Virus record (IMG/VR): IMGVR_UViG_3300009181_000033
Span: 186,001-250,000 of that record
Length of the DNA: 64,000 nt
Strand: one strand, 5' to 3'
Shown here: positions 2,593 to 21,514 of the stretch, piece after piece
How positions within the stretch are numbered: the stretch's first letter is position 1
Layout of the letters: each line of letters opens with the position of its first letter
Program-made: the position numbers and the translations under genes
The notes under the pieces: model-generated
What the model saw: only the letters and a program-made list of their open reading frames with translations
Databases searched by the model: none
Told to the model about the DNA's origin: nothing

Positions 2593-3519
2593 TTATTTAC
2601 CTTCCCAGAGTGGGATGAGGTTTTTATACCTTACCTTAAGGTCTTCGTATTTTGCACCATCGATTAGTTCTATTTTGACATCTGGGTGATCCTGATTCAG
2701 GAGTGAAAGTTTTTCTTCACAAATTTTTGTCATTCGGCCCTTTAGTTCATAATAGACCCCTTCGCACAAAAAGTCTGGGGTGTATATTTTGCCATTCGAA
2801 AGCAAAAAAGAAGTTGGCTCGTATTCCCATGATTTGCCGCAATAATTCAAAATTCTGGCAAAATTTGCCTCCCAACAGCTTCTAAAATAAGCGTCATTCA
2901 AATCGTGTCGTGTTCCTCCCCTTGCCGACGTGTAATGAGTTTCTCTTTTGGTTCGAACTCTTTTTGAAGCAGAAATGCTCATTTTTAGCCGAGCATCATC
3001 AGACGGTTTCCTGCCTTTGTGTAAAGATGAAGCAAATTCCCGACCACGGCGTGTTTTTGACCAGTGTTCTTCACCGTGGTTTTTTATGCTAGTTTGTTTG
3101 ATCTTTTCAGGAATGGTTCCATTCGCCCACAGCTTCTTCACAGATTCGGAAATTTTTTGACGAACTTCATCAGTGAATGGATTCCATCCCGACTCGTATT
3201 TTTTCAATAACGCATTTGACAATTTTTCGTTTTGCAAAGATGTTCTGGAATAAGAACCGTTATTTTTACGTGTTTCAACCATGGAAGAAAGAACACAGTC
3301 CAAGCATTTCATGACTTCTTTCTTCTTTGAAGTGTCAAAAAAAGAGCTGCCGCACTTAAGGCAAGTTTTCTCCACTGATTCGTGCTCAGTGTATCTGGTT
3401 CTTGCTCTCAATGCATAAGAGCACTTTGTGGAACACGTTCTTTTATCCGGTACCGACAATTTCTTTTTTTCATACTGAAACTCAGTGTTACAAACTTCGC
3501 ATTTTTTTATCAAAAGCAT
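2593..3519 (-). CDS. Putative free-standing homing endonuclease (Zn fingers, NUMOD3-like repeats, PD-(D/E)xK domain)
   Basis: CxxC pairs, HKGRKPSDDARLKMS, RSCWEANFARIL..WEYEP..YTPDF..YELKG; start moved to ATG 3519 behind GGAGG. Confidence 0.75.
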   Translation of the reverse strand: MLLIKKCEVCNTEFQYEKKKLSVPDKRTCSTKCSYALRARTRYTEHESVEKTCLKCGSSFFDTSKKKEVMKCLDCVLSSMVETRKNNGSYSRTSLQNEKLSNALLKKYESGWNPFTDEVRQKISESVKKLWANGTIPEKIKQTSIKNHGEEHWSKTRRGREFASSLHKGRKPSDDARLKMSISASKRVRTKRETHYTSARGGTRHDLNDAYFRSCWEANFARILNYCGKSWEYEPTSFLLSNGKIYTPDFLCEGVYYELKGRMTKICEEKLSLLNQDHPDVKIELIDGAKYEDLKVRYKNLIPLWEGK

Positions 3520-3600
3520 TGCATCAACCTCCAAACATAAATATGCCTTGGGCCAACACAAACACACTGGGTATTCAATATTTAGATTAATTCGCCGAAG

Positions 3601-10256: not shown

Positions 10257-11189
10257 TTACTTGATCTGAATGGATTCGAGCTCGTCAAGAGTTATGAGGA
10301 CATTCATGAGCGACTCGGCCTCCTCATCTTTGATACCCAGGGACTTTTGTAGATCTTCAAGAAAATCCCCAAATTTCTTCTTAGCTTTTTCAACCCTGGG
10401 GTCGGCCTTCTCGCTTTCTTCCCTGAGCAATCCTGCTAGCTTTTGCCAACGTTCGACAAGAACAACGGGACGTTCACTCTGTGTTCTCTTGCTGCGAAGA
10501 GAACTTTGCACAGCTCTGAGAATATCAGCAGCGGTCGGTCGACCTCCTCCTTCAGCTTGCATATGCTTGTTTTGAAGAAGCCAATCAATGACCTTTGTCG
10601 CTAATCCAGGATCAGCTTTTGCCTGTTTTGCAACGGCCGCAGCAAGGACCTTCGAAGCCTTGGGAACATCAACTTTCTTTTCAGATGCTTGCTCTTTAGC
10701 TTTTTCTGCATCTTGCCCAGAAGCTTCCGCTGCTGCGGCCGCAATTGTTGGAACGGCTTCTTCTTGTTTGCTTGGATCAATAGGAGTACCTGGCTTGATG
10801 CCTGATCCCCCTGCTTTTCCTTCGTCAGTGCCAGCATCATTGTTGGGCTTTGCGTTAGCGATCTCCGCGGCAGCTGGGGCTCCAGCACCGTCAAGAACAC
10901 CCTTCAAAAACAGGGCAACATCCCCATCAGAAATGCCGGCCTTTTGAGCAACGCCCTTTAATTCCTCCACTCCCTTAGTTATGTCATTCTTTGCAGAGTC
11001 AAATTGTCTCTGGTGAGCCTTGTCAGCAATCGCTTTGCCCAGGCTTTTGCCTACATCAACTCCACCACCAAGCCAGCTCTTGACTTTGTCCAAAAATCCA
11101 ACTTCAACGAGCTGTTGACGTTGGAGAGATGTTATGTTTCCCTCTAGCATAAATTGATAAAGTTTGTAATCTAAAGCTGCCTTGTTCAT
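10257..11189 (-). CDS. Ala/Lys-rich hypothetical protein, possible head-internal protein
   Basis: 310-aa ORF, AGAGG RBS; contains VERWQKLAG motif. Confidence 0.65.
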   Translation of the reverse strand: MNKAALDYKLYQFMLEGNITSLQRQQLVEVGFLDKVKSWLGGGVDVGKSLGKAIADKAHQRQFDSAKNDITKGVEELKGVAQKAGISDGDVALFLKGVLDGAGAPAAAEIANAKPNNDAGTDEGKAGGSGIKPGTPIDPSKQEEAVPTIAAAAAEASGQDAEKAKEQASEKKVDVPKASKVLAAAVAKQAKADPGLATKVIDWLLQNKHMQAEGGGRPTAADILRAVQSSLRSKRTQSERPVVLVERWQKLAGLLREESEKADPRVEKAKKKFGDFLEDLQKSLGIKDEEAESLMNVLITLDELESIQIK

Positions 11190-11232
11190 TATTTCCTCTT
11201 AAGCAATGTGCATAATAAATATGTGTCAAAAG

Positions 11233-11263
11233 CAAAACGGCAACCACATTGGTTGCCGTTTTG
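11233..11263. terminator. Intrinsic terminator after hsp20 gene
   Basis: 13-bp perfect inverted repeat CAAAACGGCAACC/GGTTGCCGTTTTG. Confidence 0.75.
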
Positions 11264-11267
11264 TATT

Positions 11268-11660
11268 TCATTTAATTTTTACTTCTACAACTTTAGAGGG
11301 AGGCTGTTTTAATTTATGAAACTTAAGGGTTAACACACCGTCTTCCAAAGATGCATCAACCGTATCGGGATCAAAATCCTTTGACAACTGATAAGAATAT
11401 TTAAAATTTTCTCCACGAATTTTACCGCTAATCTTAATGTCCCTCCCAAAGGTTTGAACCGAAAGATCCTTGGCCTTAAGACCTGGAACGTCTATAGACA
11501 AATCCAATTCATTTTCTGTGGTATTAACCCTGTACGCTGTCGAGCTAGCGTACGCTTTCATGGAATTGGATCCGTAAAGATCATTATCAAAAATCTTAAA
11601 AAGATCGATGAAGTTTCTAGAATTCGTCAGCATTGTATCGTAATCATACTTGGTTAACAT
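11268..11660 (-). CDS. Small heat-shock protein (Hsp20)
   Basis: IDVPGLKAKDLSV..VDASLEDGVLTLKF..VEVK. Confidence 0.9.
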   Translation of the reverse strand: MLTKYDYDTMLTNSRNFIDLFKIFDNDLYGSNSMKAYASSTAYRVNTTENELDLSIDVPGLKAKDLSVQTFGRDIKISGKIRGENFKYSYQLSKDFDPDTVDASLEDGVLTLKFHKLKQPPSKVVEVKIK

Positions 11661-12704: not shown

Positions 12705-13724
12705 TTAAAGACAAACGGTCTCCAAAATGAGCCTTGTCACAACATATGGATCTGCATTTGCACAAGGTCTTCTGTCTTCAAGATATCCTCTTCCTGACTG
12801 AACAACGTGCAGGGGGATTCTAATTGATGCTCCTCTATCAGAGATTCCATAACGAAATTCCCTATAAGAACACGTCTCATGATGGCCTGTTAGCCTGGAT
12901 TCAATCCCATGGCCATAATTTTCAATATGGAGATCATGTGTTTCTTTGAGCTTATTACAGGCTTCATAAATGTAATCAAGGCCGCCGCTCATTCTCATTT
13001 TGTTTGTTGAAAAATTTGTGTGAGCTCCGGCTCCGTTTAACTCAGCAACCGGCTTAGGATCCAGCTTGACAGTAATGCCATGCTTTTCACCTAATCGATA
13101 GAGAATCCACCTAGAAAGAATGAGGCCGTCCGAAACCTCAAGAGGATCTACAGCTCCAACTTGATACTCCCATTGACCCGGCATGACTTCAGAATTAATT
13201 CCGCAAATAGGTAGTCCCACATCAATACATGCTTGCATGTGTTCCTCGACTAATTCTCGACCAAAGACTTCATCAGAGCCCACTCCGCAATAAAAAGGAC
13301 CTTGATTAGGCGGATAACCACCTGTGGGCCAACCAAAGGGTCGACCATCCTTAAACATCGTATACTCTTGCTCAATGCCAAAAAGAGGTTCAAGTTGCTT
13401 AGTCTTTTCAACCACATCACGTAAAGCTGCCCTTGTGTTTGTAACATGAGGTTTGTTATTTGAATCATAAACCTCACAAAGAACGAGATAACAATAAGCT
13501 CCGCTCACAAACCTGGTGGGATCTTCCACAAACTTGACTGGCCTTAGAATACAATCACTCTTGTCACCGGTTGCCTGGCCAGTAGATGAACCATCAAATG
13601 TCCACTCCGGAAAATGAGAGAGTGCTACTTGCTCCCCTTCAAATGAAAAAATCTTTGTCTTGCTACGTAGCTTCTGGGTAGGTGTGGTTCCATCATTCCA
13701 AATATATTCGGCAACAATCTTCAT
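12705..13724 (-). CDS. glnII: Glutamine synthetase type II
   Basis: AEYIW.DG..LRSKT, FDGSSTGQA, GIEQEY, GPFYCGVG, EVMPGQWEYQVG, NGAGAHTNFST, RLTGHHET, GYLEDRRP; 339 aa. Confidence 0.95.
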   Translation of the reverse strand: MKIVAEYIWNDGTTPTQKLRSKTKIFSFEGEQVALSHFPEWTFDGSSTGQATGDKSDCILRPVKFVEDPTRFVSGAYCYLVLCEVYDSNNKPHVTNTRAALRDVVEKTKQLEPLFGIEQEYTMFKDGRPFGWPTGGYPPNQGPFYCGVGSDEVFGRELVEEHMQACIDVGLPICGINSEVMPGQWEYQVGAVDPLEVSDGLILSRWILYRLGEKHGITVKLDPKPVAELNGAGAHTNFSTNKMRMSGGLDYIYEACNKLKETHDLHIENYGHGIESRLTGHHETCSYREFRYGISDRGASIRIPLHVVQSGRGYLEDRRPCANADPYVVTRLILETVCL

Positions 13725-13786
13725 ACTTTCTCCTATAGTTTCTCTACATACTACTGCATCACATCAATGATGTTTCTATTTTATTC

Positions 13787-14443
13787 TCACTCAAATGGAG
13801 GACGAAGCACTCCGTCTTTCGTGAAACCAAATGCCTCGAGGGTGTTCTTGAATACGCCCAAGTCTATCACTTGCTGCAGCATTCTCTCTGCCAAATCCCT
13901 AATTTCTACTTGGGCATGAGTGGAATACCTGAGCTTGACGAAGTGCGCAAATGACCTGAAGTTAAACATCACGTCTGCCGTAATCTGATTTCCATAAGGA
14001 AGATAAAATCTGGCAGATTCCTTTGCTCTCTTCCTAGGAATGCCCTTCTCGACCAACCTGCTGAGCGTCTCGTGGTATCTCTGGAGACATCCCTCCATAT
14101 GCTCGATGTACCTCTCCTGTTCCTCACCATCCCAATCAGTCGGCACATAGTACTTGTCATCCTTCAATTCTTTGTACCTAGCTGACTCGGCGTTGATGGA
14201 AGTGCCAATCCTGTGTTTAAGAAGATGAATGTGGCTGGCCAATTCTGTTGTTACTAAAAAATGCAAAGAAGATTTTTCAAAAACAGTGTGATGTTCATTC
14301 TCAGCTAACATTTTCAACAATGAAGGAATTCTGTTGCTTTTTTCTTCTGTTAAGTCTCTTGAAGTAGAAGTCCATGCAGAAAGTGCATGAGTTTCGTCGG
14401 AGCCATAGTGACCAATTAATTCTACTTTATTATCGTAAGACAT
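13787..14443 (-). CDS. thyX: FAD-dependent thymidylate synthase
   Basis: HHTVFE, KHRIGTSINAESARY, KESARFYLP, HAQVEIR. Confidence 0.93.
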   Translation of the reverse strand: MSYDNKVELIGHYGSDETHALSAWTSTSRDLTEEKSNRIPSLLKMLAENEHHTVFEKSSLHFLVTTELASHIHLLKHRIGTSINAESARYKELKDDKYYVPTDWDGEEQERYIEHMEGCLQRYHETLSRLVEKGIPRKRAKESARFYLPYGNQITADVMFNFRSFAHFVKLRYSTHAQVEIRDLAERMLQQVIDLGVFKNTLEAFGFTKDGVLRPPFE

Positions 14444-14861: not shown

Positions 14862-16607
14862 TCAACCACATTTTGAAGTGCCACATGAAGAACACGTAAC
14901 GCACCCCTCCTTATAGACCAATCCTTCGACCCCACAAGAAGCACACTTCTTATCTGAAGTTGAAATTGTTCCATCAGGAATGTGACATTTCAAAACCCTG
15001 GCAATGACCTTGGAGAAGCTTCCCATATCGCTGTGCTTATCCTTTTGTAGCTGCTCCACAAGATATTGAATAGGGACTCCATGCCTGAGAGATAGAGAAA
15101 GTGTCCTTGTGAAAGCACCATGCAAGGGATTTGCGAATAGCTCAACTACATCCTTGAAGATGAGATTGTCGTCTTCACCCACAGGAATAGAAAGATTATA
15201 AGTTGAAACGCCGTCTCGCTTACCATTCTTAATGAGTGTTCCATTTTTCACCTTCTTAGGAACTTCAACGTGGGAGGAAAGGCCGCAGAACAACTCATAA
15301 GGCTTATCATCCAGCTTGCCAACCAAAACCAGATATGTCTCGGGACCATTAGAGCCCTTAAGATTAATCCTGTGAATATCACATGGAAGTTCCTTTGGTC
15401 TCTTTGGTGCATGATGCTCAGCCATCTTCTGGGGCTGACCATCTATGGTAGTTTCCTTGGGGGTGTCCTGGACTAGAACGCCTGTCCTGCAGCCATCGCG
15501 ATAGACTGTAAATCCTTTGCAGCCTGATTCCCAGGCTTTCATGTAAACATCTGCAACGACCTCACGAGAAACATCATTTGGCAGGTTACAAGTTTTTGAG
15601 ATCGCATGACAAACCCATCGCTGGGCGACTGATTGGAGCTTGACAGACATTGGCCAATCAACATCATTCGATGTTGCCTTCCAATAAGGTGAATTCTCCA
15701 CCTTGTCTTCCCCTCCAGTAACATCCATCCACTTCTTGAAACCATGGTGATAAACTTTATACTCTTGCCACTTATCGCCCAAATGATCAACAAAGTCGAC
15801 CCTTGAATCCACATCAGCAGAAGTTATCTTCTTGCGGCGCTTATAGGAAAGAAGATAAGCAGGCTCGATGCCGCTGGTAGTTTGAGTAAGACAAGAAACA
15901 GAGCCTGCAGGCGCTGTTGTTGTCAAAGCAATATTTCTTCGACCATATTTCTTCCAATTATCCACAATGGAAGCATCAGCCTCCATTATCCTCTGAAGGA
16001 AAGAGCTCTTGGTCTCAGCCTCCCACTCGTAAGCTGGGAATGAACCTCGATCCTTCGCCATGTCCACAGAAGAACGATAGGCTGAAAGAGTAAGGGTCTT
16101 ATAAATCTTCTCTGTTAGATCAACGGAGTCCTGAGAGCCATACCTGACATTCAGTGAAGCGATTGCATCACCAAGACCTGTGATTCCAAGCCCAGTCCTT
16201 CGAGCACCAGATGCCGCATCCTTAATCTTAGTCCAAAGATTAATTTCTGCTCTCTTCACATCAGCGCTCTCAGGATCTTCACTGATCTTATTCAGGATGG
16301 CATCAACAGCTTCAATCTCAAGATCAACGAGATCGTCCATTAGCTTTTGAGCCTTCTTAGAAACATCCGTGAACCTCTCGTAATCAAAGACAGGGTTGCT
16401 GCTAAAGGGTTCCTTAACAAACTTCGTAAGATTGACAAGCAAAAGTCGACATGAATCGTAGGGACTGAGGATCAACTCAGCGCAATTATGAACCAAAAGA
16501 CCATTCGCAAAAAAATTATGAACATCATCTACAGTGAGATCATAAACATCTTCGTTGTCAACGTTTTCAATAGTATCAATTTCATCCCAAAACGCTTGTT
16601 CAATCAT
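14862..16607 (-). CDS. nrdJ: Ribonucleotide reductase (class II-like) piece 3: 41-aa IntC plus C-terminal extein
   Basis: VYDLTVDDVHNFFANGLLVHN|CAELIL; RRTGLG, TTAPAGS, TTSGIEP, AISKTCNLP, KGFTVYRDG; C-terminal Zn ribbon. Confidence 0.93.
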   Translation of the reverse strand: MIEQAFWDEIDTIENVDNEDVYDLTVDDVHNFFANGLLVHNCAELILSPYDSCRLLLVNLTKFVKEPFSSNPVFDYERFTDVSKKAQKLMDDLVDLEIEAVDAILNKISEDPESADVKRAEINLWTKIKDAASGARRTGLGITGLGDAIASLNVRYGSQDSVDLTEKIYKTLTLSAYRSSVDMAKDRGSFPAYEWEAETKSSFLQRIMEADASIVDNWKKYGRRNIALTTTAPAGSVSCLTQTTSGIEPAYLLSYKRRKKITSADVDSRVDFVDHLGDKWQEYKVYHHGFKKWMDVTGGEDKVENSPYWKATSNDVDWPMSVKLQSVAQRWVCHAISKTCNLPNDVSREVVADVYMKAWESGCKGFTVYRDGCRTGVLVQDTPKETTIDGQPQKMAEHHAPKRPKELPCDIHRINLKGSNGPETYLVLVGKLDDKPYELFCGLSSHVEVPKKVKNGTLIKNGKRDGVSTYNLSIPVGEDDNLIFKDVVELFANPLHGAFTRTLSLSLRHGVPIQYLVEQLQKDKHSDMGSFSKVIARVLKCHIPDGTISTSDKKCASCGVEGLVYKEGCVTCSSCGTSKCG

Positions 16608-17406
16608 GATTTTTAATCTCCAAGTTTCTATTCGCTTTCCATTCTTTCAACGCGGCACTCATGTTTATTCCCAAACCTTCGAGTTCGACCAACGTTAATA
16701 ACACTGAGTTAATTTCAGAATATTCTTTTTTGAACTGTTCAAACTTATCGATTCTTTCCAAAGAACCGTTCGACCATTTCGATTTAATCTCTATTATCCT
16801 TTTCAAGGAATTATTTTCATATACAAAAAAGTCCGGTCTATAATATCGACCATCAGACAAGAGATAACTTCTGCACTCGACATCCCAAATTATATTCTTT
16901 TCATCTAGCCATTTTGCATATGCATATTCCCACGAACTTCTTAACCAAACATATTTAGAATGAGATTTATTGAAATGCCAGCCACAAAGATGATGTGTGT
17001 TGTTTTTGTCTCTATCAATTAATTTGCCAGTCCAATCCCTCCAGGGATTGGTTGGACCGCTGGCATTTTTTGATCTAATTTTTTTTAAATTTTCTGTCAC
17101 ACATGATCTTCCAGTCCTCTGGCTAATGTTAAGTGATTTAAAGATGGTACGTAATCGAGTGTAAGAAACGTTTCCTATCTCTTTTGACAACAACTTAAAT
17201 CCCATTCCACATTCACCATAAAGATAATTTAGATTTGAAATCAACTTGGGACAATCTGGATTGTCCTTGTCAATATAAAAGCTAGCTGTCATGTTTCCAT
17301 TTCTCGATTTAAATTTTCTTTTTTGTTTATCGCAAGCAATGATATGAATCAGCTGTCTTGTTTCTTCAATGAGTTCTTTATTTTCAATTACAATTTGATA
17401 CATCAC
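16600..17406 (-). CDS. Homing-endonuclease-like gene (PD-(D/E)xK) between halves of RNR split intein 2
   Basis: LRSSWEYAYAKWLD..YRPDFF..IEIKS; overlaps IntC gene by 8 nt. Confidence 0.8.
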   Translation of the reverse strand: MMYQIVIENKELIEETRQLIHIIACDKQKRKFKSRNGNMTASFYIDKDNPDCPKLISNLNYLYGECGMGFKLLSKEIGNVSYTRLRTIFKSLNISQRTGRSCVTENLKKIRSKNASGPTNPWRDWTGKLIDRDKNNTHHLCGWHFNKSHSKYVWLRSSWEYAYAKWLDEKNIIWDVECRSYLLSDGRYYRPDFFVYENNSLKRIIEIKSKWSNGSLERIDKFEQFKKEYSEINSVLLTLVELEGLGINMSAALKEWKANRNLEIKNHD

Positions 17407-17448
17407 TAACCCCTACCAATCATAAGTATGGAGCAGGGGTTAGTGATG
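17401..17448 (-). promoter_or_regulatory. RBS/start-occluding hairpin with ATACTTA motif in loop
   Basis: 14-bp perfect IR CATCACTAACCCCT/AGGGGTTAGTGATG; motif at 17423-17429. Confidence 0.8.
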
Positions 17449-17458
17449 ATCATTTATT

Positions 17459-18205
17459 TCATAACGAAAGAATTTTATCTTCCTTCGTGAGATTACCAGC
17501 TTCAACCCACCCGCGCTGAGTATAGACTCTATGATCTGGCGTTAGTTTAATTTTCTTTCCTGACTTTGTTGTTATCTGCAGAATCTTGGCATTGTCTTTG
17601 GTTTTGAAAGCAATTGCAGGTTTAATTACAATTTCATTGGTTTCAATGTCAAAGGCTTGAACATAGAAATTCGCCTTGTTGTCTGACAATTCTTTTACTG
17701 TTTTTGGTCCTGCATTTGTTCGAACAATTGTGTCACCTGTAACACATGGGTTTGTTGAAACATTTCCATAACCTTTATGCTCATAAACCTGGGTTGGAGT
17801 CATCTTCTTAACGGTATCCCAGAAGAGCAACCCCGGCTCGGCAGATGTCCATGCTGAATCAATAATTTGATTCCAGAGCTCACGAGCCTTGACAACCTTG
17901 GTGATCTTGGCTTCTGTAACAGGAACATCGACTGGCCATTGAAGAGTGAAGTCAGAATCATTCTTAACACAATTCATGAAATCATCGGAGAGGCGCACAG
18001 AAATGTTCGCTCCTGTGACTTTGGTAAGATCACGCTTAATATTGACGAATGTCTCCACTTCAGGATGACTACAATTGGAAGTGTAAAACCCATTTGCAAG
18101 AATTCGATGTGTGTCCTTGACCGTAAAGTCATATGTGGTTGATTTTCCGGCCGGAGAAATCCTCTTGATCTTTGATGTTGTCTTTTGAACGTTAGTGACT
18201 TCCAT
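17459..18205 (-). CDS. nrdJ: RNR piece 2: 44-aa IntC, 109-aa extein, 95-aa IntN
   Basis: YDFTVKDTHRILANGFYTSN|CSHPEV..GANISV..AEPGLLFWD..STNP|CVTGDTIV..LTPDH..KILSL. Confidence 0.93.
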   Translation of the reverse strand: MEVTNVQKTTSKIKRISPAGKSTTYDFTVKDTHRILANGFYTSNCSHPEVETFVNIKRDLTKVTGANISVRLSDDFMNCVKNDSDFTLQWPVDVPVTEAKITKVVKARELWNQIIDSAWTSAEPGLLFWDTVKKMTPTQVYEHKGYGNVSTNPCVTGDTIVRTNAGPKTVKELSDNKANFYVQAFDIETNEIVIKPAIAFKTKDNAKILQITTKSGKKIKLTPDHRVYTQRGWVEAGNLTKEDKILSL

Positions 18206-19151
18206 TTGTAATCTCCCTAATCTTTTCTACGCAAAATTCCCAGTTATTGTTTATGTCATGTTCCCAAAAGAAAAAATACTTATAACCATTTTCTTTTGCC
18301 AGTCTTTCCTTGATTTTGTCATCAAGTTGTTTCATGACTTGATGTTCCCTGAGCGGTTTCTTACCGTCTCCCCAGAAAGCTGGATTTCCATGCCAAAAAT
18401 CCCCATGGGCCTCTATCACTGTCTTTGAATCCCTCAAAAGAAAGTCATATTGTCTTTGTGCCAATATGAAGCTGTATTTGTAATTTACATTGATTTCTTT
18501 TAGAAAATTTTCTATTTTTTGTTCAATTGAAGTTTTTCGAAAGAGTTCTTTGTGAAATTGATTTCTGGTTGCATTTCGAATCTTTTCTATCGTTTCCAAG
18601 CTGTATATTCCAGTTTTATCCTTATTCCATGGGATATACTTTCTATCAAAAATATTATCGTTGTGTTTTTTTGTTAAGATTCTCTTATCTCTGATTTGTT
18701 CGTAATTTTCTGATTTACACCAGTGAGTCTTTTTGACTGAATCATTTCTTTGAGATAACTTAATTGCGTAACAAGTGTCGGAACAAGTTCCAATTTTTTG
18801 TTTTGATCTTTTGCATTTTGCATTGCAAATCGAACAAAGTCTCCAAGACTTTTCTTCTTTCTTTAAAAGCTTGGATGCTCTTTTGACTTGATGAAGCTCT
18901 TCTGGCGTATACTTCTCTACCGTTATCTTCCTTCTTGATATCTTGGCCGTCTCCCATACTGCCTTAAATTCATACTTGTTTTCAAAAAGTTCGTGAAGTC
19001 TTTGGTTGTTTATATTAAGGGCACGAACAAGCCCTGCCGGAGAACTCATCTTAAATTCATTAACAGTTTTTCCACGATAAAAGACTGTCTCCGGCAACTC
19101 AAAATAAAGAGTCGTGGTTGTTTCATTCAACAATCTCAGGATGATTGACAT
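18192..19151 (-). CDS. Homing-endonuclease-like gene (Vsr/DUF559-like, NUMOD3) between halves of RNR split intein 1
   Basis: PWNKDK..ETIEKIR, TSIE, YDFLL..IEAHGDFWH..WEHDI. Confidence 0.8.
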   Translation of the reverse strand: MSIILRLLNETTTTLYFELPETVFYRGKTVNEFKMSSPAGLVRALNINNQRLHELFENKYEFKAVWETAKISRRKITVEKYTPEELHQVKRASKLLKKEEKSWRLCSICNAKCKRSKQKIGTCSDTCYAIKLSQRNDSVKKTHWCKSENYEQIRDKRILTKKHNDNIFDRKYIPWNKDKTGIYSLETIEKIRNATRNQFHKELFRKTSIEQKIENFLKEINVNYKYSFILAQRQYDFLLRDSKTVIEAHGDFWHGNPAFWGDGKKPLREHQVMKQLDDKIKERLAKENGYKYFFFWEHDINNNWEFCVEKIREITNGSH

Positions 19152-19163
19152 GAAACATAAGTA

Positions 19164-20030
19164 TCACCGCTCTTTAAAACTGACATCATAAAAAACAAGT
19201 TCTTCTTTATCAACATCAATATCCTTGATTTGTTTAAGGTACTCTTCGCCTGTCTCGATGTTTTTTACAACAAATTTGTGTGTTGCCGTGACCTTGATGA
19301 TTTTGCCATTTTCAGCTTCAACCTCATAAATTTCACTGTCTTCAAATTTTTGATACGCTTCAATTTCCTTCCAGCCTTCATGGGTCCAAATTTTCCCATT
19401 AAATTTGTTGTCAACAACATCGTCAATTCTTTTCCAACCTTGGTCTGTTAGTACCAAGGTAGAACCTTCAAAGCATTCAATGGTGAGCATGAGTGCTCCT
19501 CGACGACCACCTTGGGCAACCTCACGGCAAGTATTTGAAAATCTTTCCATGAAGACACCAATGCCATCTGTTGTGCCGGCAGCATTTGCAGTGTGCATGC
19601 CCTTGGGACGAATTGTGGAAATGTCAAAACCGACACCTCCACGACGCTTCATGATCTGAGCCTGCTCCTGGTCTGTGAACAGGATTCCACCATAGGAATC
19701 TTGAGGAGAAGCAATTACGAAACAATTGGATAGAGATTGAAGCTTGTACTCGTTTCCAATTGCCGACATGGGGGAACCCTGAGGAACAACTTCCCATGAA
19801 GACAACATGTCATAAATCTCACCTTCAGTCAATGGATTAGGATACTTGGACTCGATTCTGGCGAACTCCTTTGCAAGACGACGGTGCATATCGCTTGGAG
19901 TCTTCTCAAGCAAGGAACCCTCGGCATTTCTGAGAGCGTACTTCGAAATGAAGACGGAAGCTGCCAATTCATCTCCATTGAAATACTTGAGTGATGCTTC
20001 GTATGCCTCTTCTTTTGTGTATGTGTTCAT
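19164..20030 (-). CDS. nrdJ: RNR piece 1: 185-aa extein plus 103-aa IntN
   Basis: PQGSPM, SLSNCFV, RRGGVG, VAQGGRRGALMLTIE|CFEGSTLV..VTATH. Confidence 0.93.
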   Translation of the reverse strand: MNTYTKEEAYEASLKYFNGDELAASVFISKYALRNAEGSLLEKTPSDMHRRLAKEFARIESKYPNPLTEGEIYDMLSSWEVVPQGSPMSAIGNEYKLQSLSNCFVIASPQDSYGGILFTDQEQAQIMKRRGGVGFDISTIRPKGMHTANAAGTTDGIGVFMERFSNTCREVAQGGRRGALMLTIECFEGSTLVLTDQGWKRIDDVVDNKFNGKIWTHEGWKEIEAYQKFEDSEIYEVEAENGKIIKVTATHKFVVKNIETGEEYLKQIKDIDVDKEELVFYDVSFKER

Positions 20031-20068: not shown

Positions 20069-21514
20069 CTATACGATGCTCGAGTGAGATTCACTCATTC
20101 CATTTAAAGAATTTTTCTTTGAAGAGAACTCCCCTTTGAGCTCCTTCCATTTTGCTCTCAGGGCCTGCTTTTGTGTTTCCTCATCAGAAGCCGTGACTGT
20201 CTCTGGGGCATCGGCTGTTCCAACAATTTCAAACATACTCTTGGCGGTATTCATCTTGATTGGATAAACCAAGCCGTCCCTTCCTGCTCGATTCTTTGCA
20301 ACATAAAGTCTCCCCCACCCAGAAGCCTTCTCATGAGGGCGTCTAGATACAGAGACAATAACATCACAAATCATAGCTTTGCCATAAGCTTCTGACATAT
20401 TTGTCATGTCGATTACTTCGCTATTGGCGCCTTCTTTGTTCGACTGTGATGCTGTCCAAATCGGTATTCCAATCTCCATCGCTAGCCCACGCAACTCTTC
20501 ATAAACAAGTTTAAGCTCATGTCTTAGAGAATCGAACTGCCGTGATGACCTCATGATGTCTGCATAATCAATAATAACAAGATCAGGTTTGAATCCTTTT
20601 AAGTCAAGTCTTTCTATGTGTGACTTGATGGTGTAAATGGAAGCTGTGTTTGTGGGATATTCCTTGATGTAAAGTCGACCAAGGTTCATGTCCTTATATT
20701 TGGCAACAACTTCATCTTTGCGATCCATAACCTCGTTCGAATCTATGTCGCAAAGATTGGAATCGTATCGAATACCGACGGCTGTTTCGGAAAGCTCAAA
20801 GGTGTAGTGAAGAACATTCTTACCTTCACGAAGAGCATTAGCACCAATCATAGTCAGCCAGTGAGACTTGCCGCTGCCGCTGGCACCAACGACACAGAGA
20901 AGTTCGCCCTTACCACTGCCTCCATTTAAGATTTCCTTCTTGTCCAGCTCGGCAAGTCTTGTGGGAATAGTGTCACGCTTTAGCTTGGTGAAGCGTGCAT
21001 CCATTTCATTGAAAAAGTCATGGCCGACGGATGGAGCTGTGCCGACTTGAACAGCCTTCTTGATTGTCTCTACGATAGATTCATACTTGTTTTCCTGCAT
21101 CTGGTCGACGGCAGACTCAAGAGCCTTCTTCAGAGCTTGCTTCCTGCAAAACTCTAGAGACTTGTCCTTGACGTACTGGAGATCGCCGGGATCGGGATTT
21201 GTCCTCATTCTCTGAAGGTAATCAACGATTTGATCACGCAAAATGAGATCGGTGCCGGCCTTGAGATCGTCTTTGATGATGGTAACAAGGAGCTGTAGAG
21301 TTGGGAATACCTTGTACTTCTTTGAATAGGAAAAATATCTGTCGGCCAAGAACTTGAGATAGTTGAGCTCAAAATATGAGACGTCAACAACTTCCATCAT
21401 CTGCTCGGCCCATTTATGATCGGTCAATAAAGCCTGTCCAAGCTTTTCTTGGAACGACTTACCAAATTGGCCGAATGAAACACCATTTGAATTTACGCGA
21501 TCATTTTCTGACAT
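20069..21514 (-). CDS. Replicative SF4 helicase (DnaB/gp41-like)
   Basis: GASGSGKS, IIDYAD, WTASQ, KNRAG. Confidence 0.9.
   Translation of the reverse strand: MSENDRVNSNGVSFGQFGKSFQEKLGQALLTDHKWAEQMMEVVDVSYFELNYLKFLADRYFSYSKKYKVFPTLQLLVTIIKDDLKAGTDLILRDQIVDYLQRMRTNPDPGDLQYVKDKSLEFCRKQALKKALESAVDQMQENKYESIVETIKKAVQVGTAPSVGHDFFNEMDARFTKLKRDTIPTRLAELDKKEILNGGSGKGELLCVVGASGSGKSHWLTMIGANALREGKNVLHYTFELSETAVGIRYDSNLCDIDSNEVMDRKDEVVAKYKDMNLGRLYIKEYPTNTASIYTIKSHIERLDLKGFKPDLVIIDYADIMRSSRQFDSLRHELKLVYEELRGLAMEIGIPIWTASQSNKEGANSEVIDMTNMSEAYGKAMICDVIVSVSRRPHEKASGWGRLYVAKNRAGRDGLVYPIKMNTAKSMFEIVGTADAPETVTASDEETQKQALRAKWKELKGEFSSKKNSLNGMSESHSSIV

Follow-up and report, generated by a model that had tools for sequence, protein, structure and literature searches.

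A phage ribonucleotide reductase gene in three pieces, interrupted by two split inteins of opposite charge polarity

In the fractured genes described by Dassa et al. (2009, NAR 37:2560, PMC2677866), namely gp41-1, gp41-8, IMPDH-1, and NrdA-2 as well as NrdJ-1, the N-terminal part of a host protein is encoded in frame with the N-terminal half of a split intein (IntN), a short spacer and a free-standing homing endonuclease gene (HEG) follow on the same strand, and the C-terminal intein half (IntC) is encoded in frame with the rest of the host protein. Both charge polarities occur among these inteins, and their strand charges are complementary; the first-pass annotation of the DNA analyzed here had invoked such fractured phage genes and their electrostatic complementarity, in agreement with that paper. 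We report that this layout occurs twice in one gene, at positions 14862–20030 of a stretch of 64,000 nucleotides (hereafter the window, positions 186001–250000 of the virus record IMGVR_UViG_3300009181_000033). The gene codes for NrdJ, an adenosylcobalamin-dependent (class II) ribonucleotide reductase (RNR). As in the genes of Dassa et al., the host functions in phage DNA metabolism, a Vsr-like HEG family appears to be involved, the inteins are split after motif N4 and before motif C2, and local charges are complementary on two long strands. Unlike their loci, which have one split intein per gene (DnaE-1 with part of an extra in-frame intein), the gene in the window has two elements and is in three pieces. 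In addition, its second HEG belongs by sequence to neither of their two HEG families, and its spacers are of 12 and 52 nt, compared with 27–51 nt. The open-access literature searched yielded no account of a natural gene cut into three pieces by two split inteins that carry HEGs; RNR genes interrupted by several introns or inteins are already known. From the observed architecture, collinearity, and conservation of the locus, and from the charge classes and distribution of its inteins, it is probable that two independent fractured-gene elements reside in the sole NrdJ gene of this phage, that the enzyme is rebuilt by two trans-splicing reactions, and that the opposite polarity of the inteins comes from their ancestry.

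The locus consists of five consecutive open reading frames (ORFs) on the minus strand, in the order piece 1, HEG1, piece 2, HEG2, and piece 3. Piece 1 (19164–20030, 288 aa) is the first extein (19476..20030, residues 1–185, ending in RRGALMLTIE) followed in frame by IntN1 (19167..19475, 103 aa, stop codon at 19164–19166). HEG1 (18192–19151) is a free-standing gene of 319 aa. Piece 2 (17459–18205, 248 aa) has intein sequence on both sides, as it comprises IntC1 (18074..18205, 44 aa), the second extein (17747..18073, 109 aa, CSHPEVE...GNVSTNP), and IntN2 (17462..17746, 95 aa, stop codon at 17459–17461). HEG2 (16600–17406, 268 aa) is also free-standing. Piece 3 (14862–16607, 581 aa) starts with IntC2 (16485..16607, 41 aa) and continues with the third extein (14865..16484, 540 aa, stop codon at 14862–14864), whose sequence begins with CAELILSPYDSCRL and whose C-terminal tail is rich in Cys. 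The stop codon of piece 1 is separated from HEG1 by 12 nt and that of piece 2 from HEG2 by 52 nt, the end of HEG1 overlaps the start of piece 2 by 14 nt, and the end of HEG2 overlaps the start of piece 3 by 8 nt. Shine-Dalgarno motifs are found upstream of piece 1 (AGGA), of piece 2 (AGGGAG, before an ATG), and of piece 3 (GGAG). Intein or Hint domains are detected with Pfam at the C-terminal end of piece 1, the C-terminal end of piece 2, and the N-terminal end of piece 3; IntC1 is recognized through its conserved motifs, and the PHROG matches are consistent with the layout. The three exteins (185 + 109 + 540, counted by script) give a deduced spliced product of 834 aa with the junctions LTIE↓CSHPE and STNP↓CAE. 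The coordinates, the lengths, and the total of the three pieces proposed by the first-pass annotation were all reproduced by script. A megablast search of the locus against GenBank phages gave no match.

The three pieces correspond to consecutive parts of one enzyme. The exteins tile the NCBIfam model TIGR02504 (NrdJ_Z, 606 positions) at 3–163, 165–281, and 282–604, with scores of 99, 96.9, and 280.4 bits; each piece is below the cut-off of 399.95, the simple sum is 476, and no piece has a better-scoring model than NrdJ_Z. The RNR barrel profile of Pfam is likewise split in order over the pieces (positions 1–87, 85–212, and 212–523), the first extein matching the Ribonuc_red_lgN domain as well. 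A first scan of viral contigs with piece 2 gave only uninterrupted NrdJ homologues (L001–L018), which served as collinearity controls. Over 833 aligned residues, the spliced product shares 79% identity with one of them, L008 (on a 212-kb viral contig), without gaps at either junction. Ligation in silico restores the active-site NPC(G/A)E thiyl loop as STNP↓CAELILSPYDSC, identical to that of L008, and this agrees with the earlier placement of the second junction, STNP↓CAE, at the thiyl-radical Cys. The source record (297,894 bp) has direct terminal repeats and is 100% complete according to CheckV. Since this complete genome contains no second match to an RNR large subunit and no NrdB (no match to PF00268), the split NrdJ is the only RNR of the phage, of class II.

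The HINT splicing motifs and their catalytic residues are present in both inteins. The splicing motifs are C...VTATH for IntN1 (Cys1 and a TxxH block B), TSN↓C for IntC1 (which ends in HRILANGFYTSN, the +1 residue being Cys), C...LTPDH for IntN2, and VHN↓C for IntC2 (which ends in HNFFANGLLVHN, the +1 residue being the thiyl-radical Cys itself). Cys1, TxxH, the terminal Asn, and the +1 Cys are conserved across all homologues. Between the window and two related three-piece loci, L022 and L023 (several dS values being saturated), all exteins, intein halves, and HEGs that allowed an estimate of dS have a ratio of nonsynonymous to synonymous substitution rates (dN/dS) of 0.05–0.10, a sign of purifying selection. 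This selection and the collinear product lend indirect support to trans-splicing. These data bear on the possibility that no splicing takes place, either because the gene is decaying under its load of selfish elements or because the fragments assemble noncovalently. Decay has a precedent in Campylobacter phages, for which degeneration of RNR under a load of inteins and HEGs was proposed (PMC3653736). Noncovalent assembly has one in NrdA of Aeromonas phage Aeh1 (PMC3045599), an RNR large subunit that is reportedly cut by a free-standing HEG although the phage still needs the enzyme. The Aeh1 gene has no intein, whereas in the window intact split inteins flank each HEG. With five intact ORFs, intein halves that are under the same constraint as the exteins, invariant splicing residues, and no other RNR in a complete genome, absence of splicing is very improbable; moreover, as the thiyl Cys doubles as +1 nucleophile, a failure of ligation would leave the active-site loop cut.

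Rebuilding by splicing, the reading preferred here, would proceed as follows. A single NrdJ gene would have been invaded twice, independently, by split mini-inteins, each with a free-standing HEG between its halves: element 1, with the Vsr-like HEG, in the LTI(S/E)↓(V/C) loop, and element 2, with the PD-(D/E)xK HEG, directly before the thiyl-radical Cys. Cotranscription of the five ORFs is probable, and three polypeptides would be made. IntN1, with its acidic strand, would pair with the basic strand of IntC1, and IntN2, with its basic strand, with the acidic strand of IntC2. Two independent trans-splicing reactions, in either order, would then give the 834-aa NrdJ with native-like junctions, and the HEGs would carry each element into intein-free alleles during coinfection.

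An endonuclease gene in each gap had been proposed from the sequence, and profile and fold comparisons now place a putative Vsr-like gene in the first and one of predicted PD-(D/E)xK fold in the second. HEG1 is a candidate homing endonuclease with matches to the Vsr profiles that remain under the respective cut-offs (Pfam Vsr, E = 3.9e-4, 20.7 bits, cut-off 27; TIGR00632 vsr, E = 1.1e-4, 22.5 bits, cut-off 97.85), together with a weak match to PDB 1cw0, an FWHG-type motif, and PHROG matches to HNH and homing endonuclease families. Homologues of HEG1 are found in L019, L022, and L177, and its dN/dS is 0.10. In the comparison with L022, intein 1 and HEG1 (window 18074–19475) have dS of 0.43–0.82, lower than the 1.9 of the flanking extein 1 (the other flanking values being saturated), which suggests that intein 1 and HEG1 moved between related phages by recent horizontal transfer.

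HEG2 has no sequence match in Pfam, NCBIfam, or PDB. Its family has 22 members, all located between IntN2 and IntC2, and in these E159, P190-D191, E205, and K207 are invariant, in the motifs WLRSSWE, YRPDFF, and IEIK. The confident AlphaFold2 model of HEG2 (predicted local distance difference test score, pLDDT, 87.6) gives Foldseek matches that are weak (E 0.003–0.3) and all of restriction-endonuclease fold, including BstEII, TT1808, TnsA, and I-Bth0305I. HEG2 is therefore a predicted PD-(D/E)xK nuclease, assigned to a fold and, because all the Foldseek matches are weak (E ≥ 0.003), not to a family. A free-standing ORF of 324 aa elsewhere in the window (2593–3567, minus strand) has a C-terminal domain similar to the core of HEG2 (tblastn, 33% over 64 aa, E = 4.6e-6) and a weak match to Pfam Phage_endo_I; it is not associated with an intein and is probably another homing endonuclease.

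The inteins themselves belong to different families. Intein 1 occupies the LTI(S/E)↓(V/C) loop of NrdJ; IntN1 matches the Intein_splicing and Hint profiles of Pfam weakly, and its matches to DnaE and DnaX inteins are marginal and distant. Intein 2 lies directly before the thiyl-radical Cys, which serves as its +1 residue, and is a relative of NrdJ-1, a widely used, ultrafast trans-splicing intein (PDB 8UBS and 9OMB). IntN2 scores 43.7 bits with Pfam Intein_splicing and matches NrdJ-1 (PDB 8ubs) with E = 1.8e-10 over residues 5–93, and IntC2 aligns with positions 119–155 of the same Pfam profile. Host enzyme and active-site loop are common to NrdJ-1 and intein 2. The two differ in position, as NrdJ-1 is one residue more C-terminal (Dassa et al.) and the window intein precedes the thiyl Cys with Cys as +1, and in polarity, which in the window is reversed (IntN positive, IntC negative). 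Between the two inteins of the window, IntN1 and IntN2 are 31% identical, and IntC1 and IntC2 are 34% identical.

The first-pass annotation had counted by hand (K+R minus D+E) net charges of −9 for IntN1, +4 for IntC1, +5 for IntN2, and −11 for IntC2, and these values were obtained exactly. The complementarity is also present on the interface strands, which were placed by alignment rather than on a solved structure: the strand before block B has −4 in IntN1 and +4 in IntN2 (there before LTPDH), and the first strand of IntC has +5 in IntC1 and −7 in IntC2. All 26 unique intein-1 pairs have a negative IntN (−4 to −16) and a positive IntC (+3 to +10). The strand motifs of this intein are EIYEVEAENG (acidic) and SKIKRIS (basic). 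The split inteins at site 2 form two homologous classes. Class A, to which the window belongs, has IntN2 of +2 to +7 and IntC2 of −8 to −11; class B, which resembles NrdJ-1 and has its polarity (IntN negative, IntC positive), has IntN2 of 0 to −10 and IntC2 of −2 to +4. Among the 23 unique site-2 pairs, the net charges of IntN and IntC are anticorrelated (Pearson r = −0.93); given this and the uniform polarity of the 26 intein-1 pairs, the charge pattern is not due to chance.

The two classes differ in homologous segments. Before block B, the strand is of the type AKILQITTKSGKKIK for class A and ANIIELELEDG for class B. For the first strand of IntC, the corresponding sequences are of the type FWDEIDTIENVDNED (class A) and KIKIKKINIKQNED (class B); over its C-terminal 20 residues, IntC is near-identical between the classes. 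The reversal resembles a compensatory swap of charges that took place naturally across the split interface, within one intein family and at one insertion site. The charged strands are kept in contiguous mini-inteins of 131–149 aa, found in class A (L024, L073, and L082) as in class B (L100 and L140), and shifts between split and contiguous forms appear to be frequent. HEG2 homologues are found with both classes.

The distribution of the elements was surveyed by a protein search with piece 2 and by scans with the IntC1 motif. The former gave other middle pieces (P0001–P0004, P0070, P0074, P0075, and P0086) and about 100 proteins of 387–430 aa in which exteins 1 and 2 are continuous and followed by IntN2, i.e., two-piece genes with a split intein at site 2 only. 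The latter gave about 30 unique loci with a split intein 1. In about 12 of these nothing occupies site 2, and in about 10 it is filled by a large contiguous intein with an endonuclease; one locus (L024) has a cis mini-intein of class A there, and the rest have a split intein of class A or class B. The split inteins of class A and class B, for their part, are mostly in genes lacking intein 1. L047 and L055 have intein 1 in contiguous form. Its HEG is missing from L049, L058, L066, and L178, and in several loci the halves are only 43–75 nt apart with no HEG between them. These mixed states fit independent homing and decay, and on such comparisons the two elements are taken as different intein families that move independently. 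As for HEG2, a remnant of 41 C-terminal residues is retained in L171, and in L178 the gene is truncated at its 5′ end and starts right after the stop codon of IntN2.

One three-piece variant is organized differently. In L177 (518–1867, P0086), IntC1 and extein 2 are followed by a 92-aa IntN2 of a large intein type ("AVADG/ATADG"), and the next ORF has an HNH endonuclease domain fused in frame to the start of IntC, which places the split upstream of the endonuclease domain; the junction itself lies past the end of the contig. This locus was considered as a third test case for polarity and dropped, because its IntC2 is fused to the HNH domain and cut by the end of the contig.

The opposite polarity of the two inteins raises the question of its role. 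The first-pass annotation had proposed that the inversion makes the pairs orthogonal, with repulsion preventing the skipping of piece 2 and its cyclization, and it had named random polarity among homologous doubly split genes as an outcome that would refute this. In its strongest version, the inversion would determine orthogonality and would have been selected for, or required, to carry two split inteins. The non-cognate halves of the window are like-charged as had been claimed, both overall (IntN1/IntC2, −9 and −11; IntC1/IntN2, +4 and +5) and on their strands (−4 and −7; +5 and +4), and four to five of the seven to eight three-piece variants found carry class A. The survey, however, yielded complete or nearly complete three-piece genes in which both inteins have the same polarity, in two separate lineages. 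L019, L020, and L021 are one locus in three ENA samples, with five intact ORFs, both HEGs homologous to those of the window, and a class B intein at site 2 (IntN1 −16, IntC1 +10, IntN2 −4, IntC2 +1). L178 (P0075) is another three-piece locus with class B (IntN1 −12, IntC1 +10, IntN2 −9). In both lineages, IntC1 and IntN2, carried by the same middle piece, attract instead of repelling each other. Such variation of polarity among homologous three-piece genes is the outcome that the first-pass annotation itself had given as refuting its proposal.

Nor does class A depend on the three-piece state. Its polarity recurs in two-piece genes that lack intein 1, with more than 60 protein clusters, and class A shows no enrichment of the three-piece state (4/63, against 2/22 in class B; Fisher p = 0.65, in a small and biased sample). 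In the tree of extein 2, built on 91 columns, three-piece proteins nest among the two-piece proteins of their own class, for A and B alike; P0075, for instance, groups as sister with P0114, a two-piece protein (support 100/95). The class of the site-2 intein follows the clade of the host extein. Because class A is mostly found without intein 1, because class B three-piece genes exist, and because three-piece forms nest within their class, the polarity of intein 2 is best seen as inherited with the class A lineage, older than the arrival of intein 1 and independent of its presence. Each three-piece gene would then be the sum of intein 1 and whichever site-2 class circulates in the clade of its host. 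Hence, the opposite polarity in the window would be a matter of ancestry, the family of intein 1 being always N-negative and C-positive, and class A always the reverse.

Work on engineered inteins bears on the same question from both sides. Beyer et al. (bioRxiv 10.1101/546465) pointed out the opposite polarity of gp41-1 and Npu DnaE and examined whether orthogonality can be reached by swapping charges. In favor of a decisive role of charge, engineering the strands of NpuDnaB gave orthogonal halves, and an earlier swap of charges over whole fragments reportedly suppressed the cross-reactivity of Npu DnaE, as they cite. Against it, a swap restricted to the strands did not abolish the cross-splicing of Npu DnaE. 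Pinto et al. (2020, PMC7090010) found 15 of 16 divergent split inteins to be mutually orthogonal, including NrdJ-1 with IMPDH-1 and gp41-1 with gp41-8, which have the same polarity per Dassa et al. According to published matrices, divergent split inteins are usually orthogonal whatever their polarity (PMC7090010; 10.1101/546465). With about 30% identity between the inteins of the window, class A in two-piece genes, class B in three-piece loci, and no enrichment, the proposal that the inversion creates orthogonality or was selected for the three-piece state is not supported, and we regard a determining role as unlikely. Correct pairing would most likely be ensured mainly by sequence divergence, and like-charge repulsion would at most be a bonus at this locus.

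A milder version holds that the inversion, ancestral and not required, measurably lowers misassociation here (skipping, cyclization, or unproductive complexes) relative to combinations of like polarity, so that genes combining class A with intein 1 are somewhat fitter. It is established that electrostatics steers how split inteins associate (PMC2677866; 10.1101/546465), and in its strand motifs intein 1 is similar to class B (IIELELEDG and KIKKINI) and not to class A, for which reason a class B partner is more likely to misassociate with intein 1. L019 can be read in the same sense, as its weakly charged site-2 pair (−4/+1) stands beside a strongly charged intein 1 (−16/+10). The counts show no enrichment of class A, however, and L178 joins an IntC1 of +10 and an IntN2 of −9 in one polypeptide. 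Such an exaptation is possible, if somewhat doubtful. In L019 (2719–7958), the intein-1 pair is the most strongly charged that was seen and the site-2 pair among the weakest; this contrast could be another way of keeping the pairs apart or, with a single case, a coincidence. A more speculative and rather unlikely extension would be that, with the charge reversal confined to two interface strands and if coresidence with intein 1 favors class A, electrostatic compatibility filters the combinations of selfish split inteins that can share one gene. If so, the window would hold a naturally prevalidated orthogonal pair, NrdJ-1-like and with Cys as the +1 residue, for the ligation of three fragments.

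Several points weigh against the reading of two independent elements, with splicing and inherited polarity. The penultimate residue of IntC1 is Ser (Ser-Asn) and not the His of the usual His-Asn, although this is invariant throughout the family. The set of homologues is biased toward relatives of the query, and the 91 columns of the extein-2 alignment are few. The class B three-piece loci L019 and L178 are known from metagenome contigs alone, and heavy mis-splicing in them would weaken the argument that inversion is unnecessary. Finally, a scan of this phage for sigma-70 promoters and terminators gave results near the shuffled expectation and was uninformative.

With two independent invasions by split inteins and HEGs apparently tolerated, an essential phage enzyme would have to be rebuilt from three polypeptides. 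The locus resembles engineered tandem systems, in which three fragments are ligated by two split inteins that do not cross-react and the charge polarity of strands beta3 and beta6 has served as an idea for orthogonality. The engineered systems are man-made combinations, whereas the window holds a natural coresident pair in a single essential gene, as read from its sequence. Both polarities, orthogonality by charge swap, tandem trans-splicing, and biotechnological use are already published. In particular, gp41-1 (N-positive, C-negative) and NrdJ-1 (N-negative, C-positive), of opposite polarity per Dassa et al., have been combined for recursive assembly of multiple fragments (Pinto et al.), and since such pairs are in use, the biotechnological gain is incremental. 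The related loci offer a natural panel, in which intein 1 is found with a class A, a class B, a cis, or an empty site 2. The most interesting by-product is the pair of charge-reversed sister classes at one insertion site, which allow the idea of electrostatic pairing to be tested on evolved rather than designed sequences.

As read by eye only, the ORFs that flank the locus in the window (12705–14443 and 20069–21514, minus strand) are glutamine-synthetase-like (339 aa), ThyX-like (218 aa), and DnaB-like helicase (481 aa), and from these the split RNR appears to sit in a module of nucleotide metabolism and replication. The phage has a third intein about 7.8 kb past the end of the window (257774–260902 of the record, G000:C1, minus strand). 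It is contiguous, with an HNH-like region (HHCNF...N...H, by eye), and IntN2 matches it with 36% identity over 87 aa. It lies in an ORF of 1042 aa just downstream of one of 542 aa, the two being taken, by eye only, as portal and large terminase. In L019, a gene of the IS605 OrfB/TnpB type (Cas12f-like; 10810–11415) lies downstream of the three-piece NrdJ, at a distance of about 3 kb on the ENA contig.

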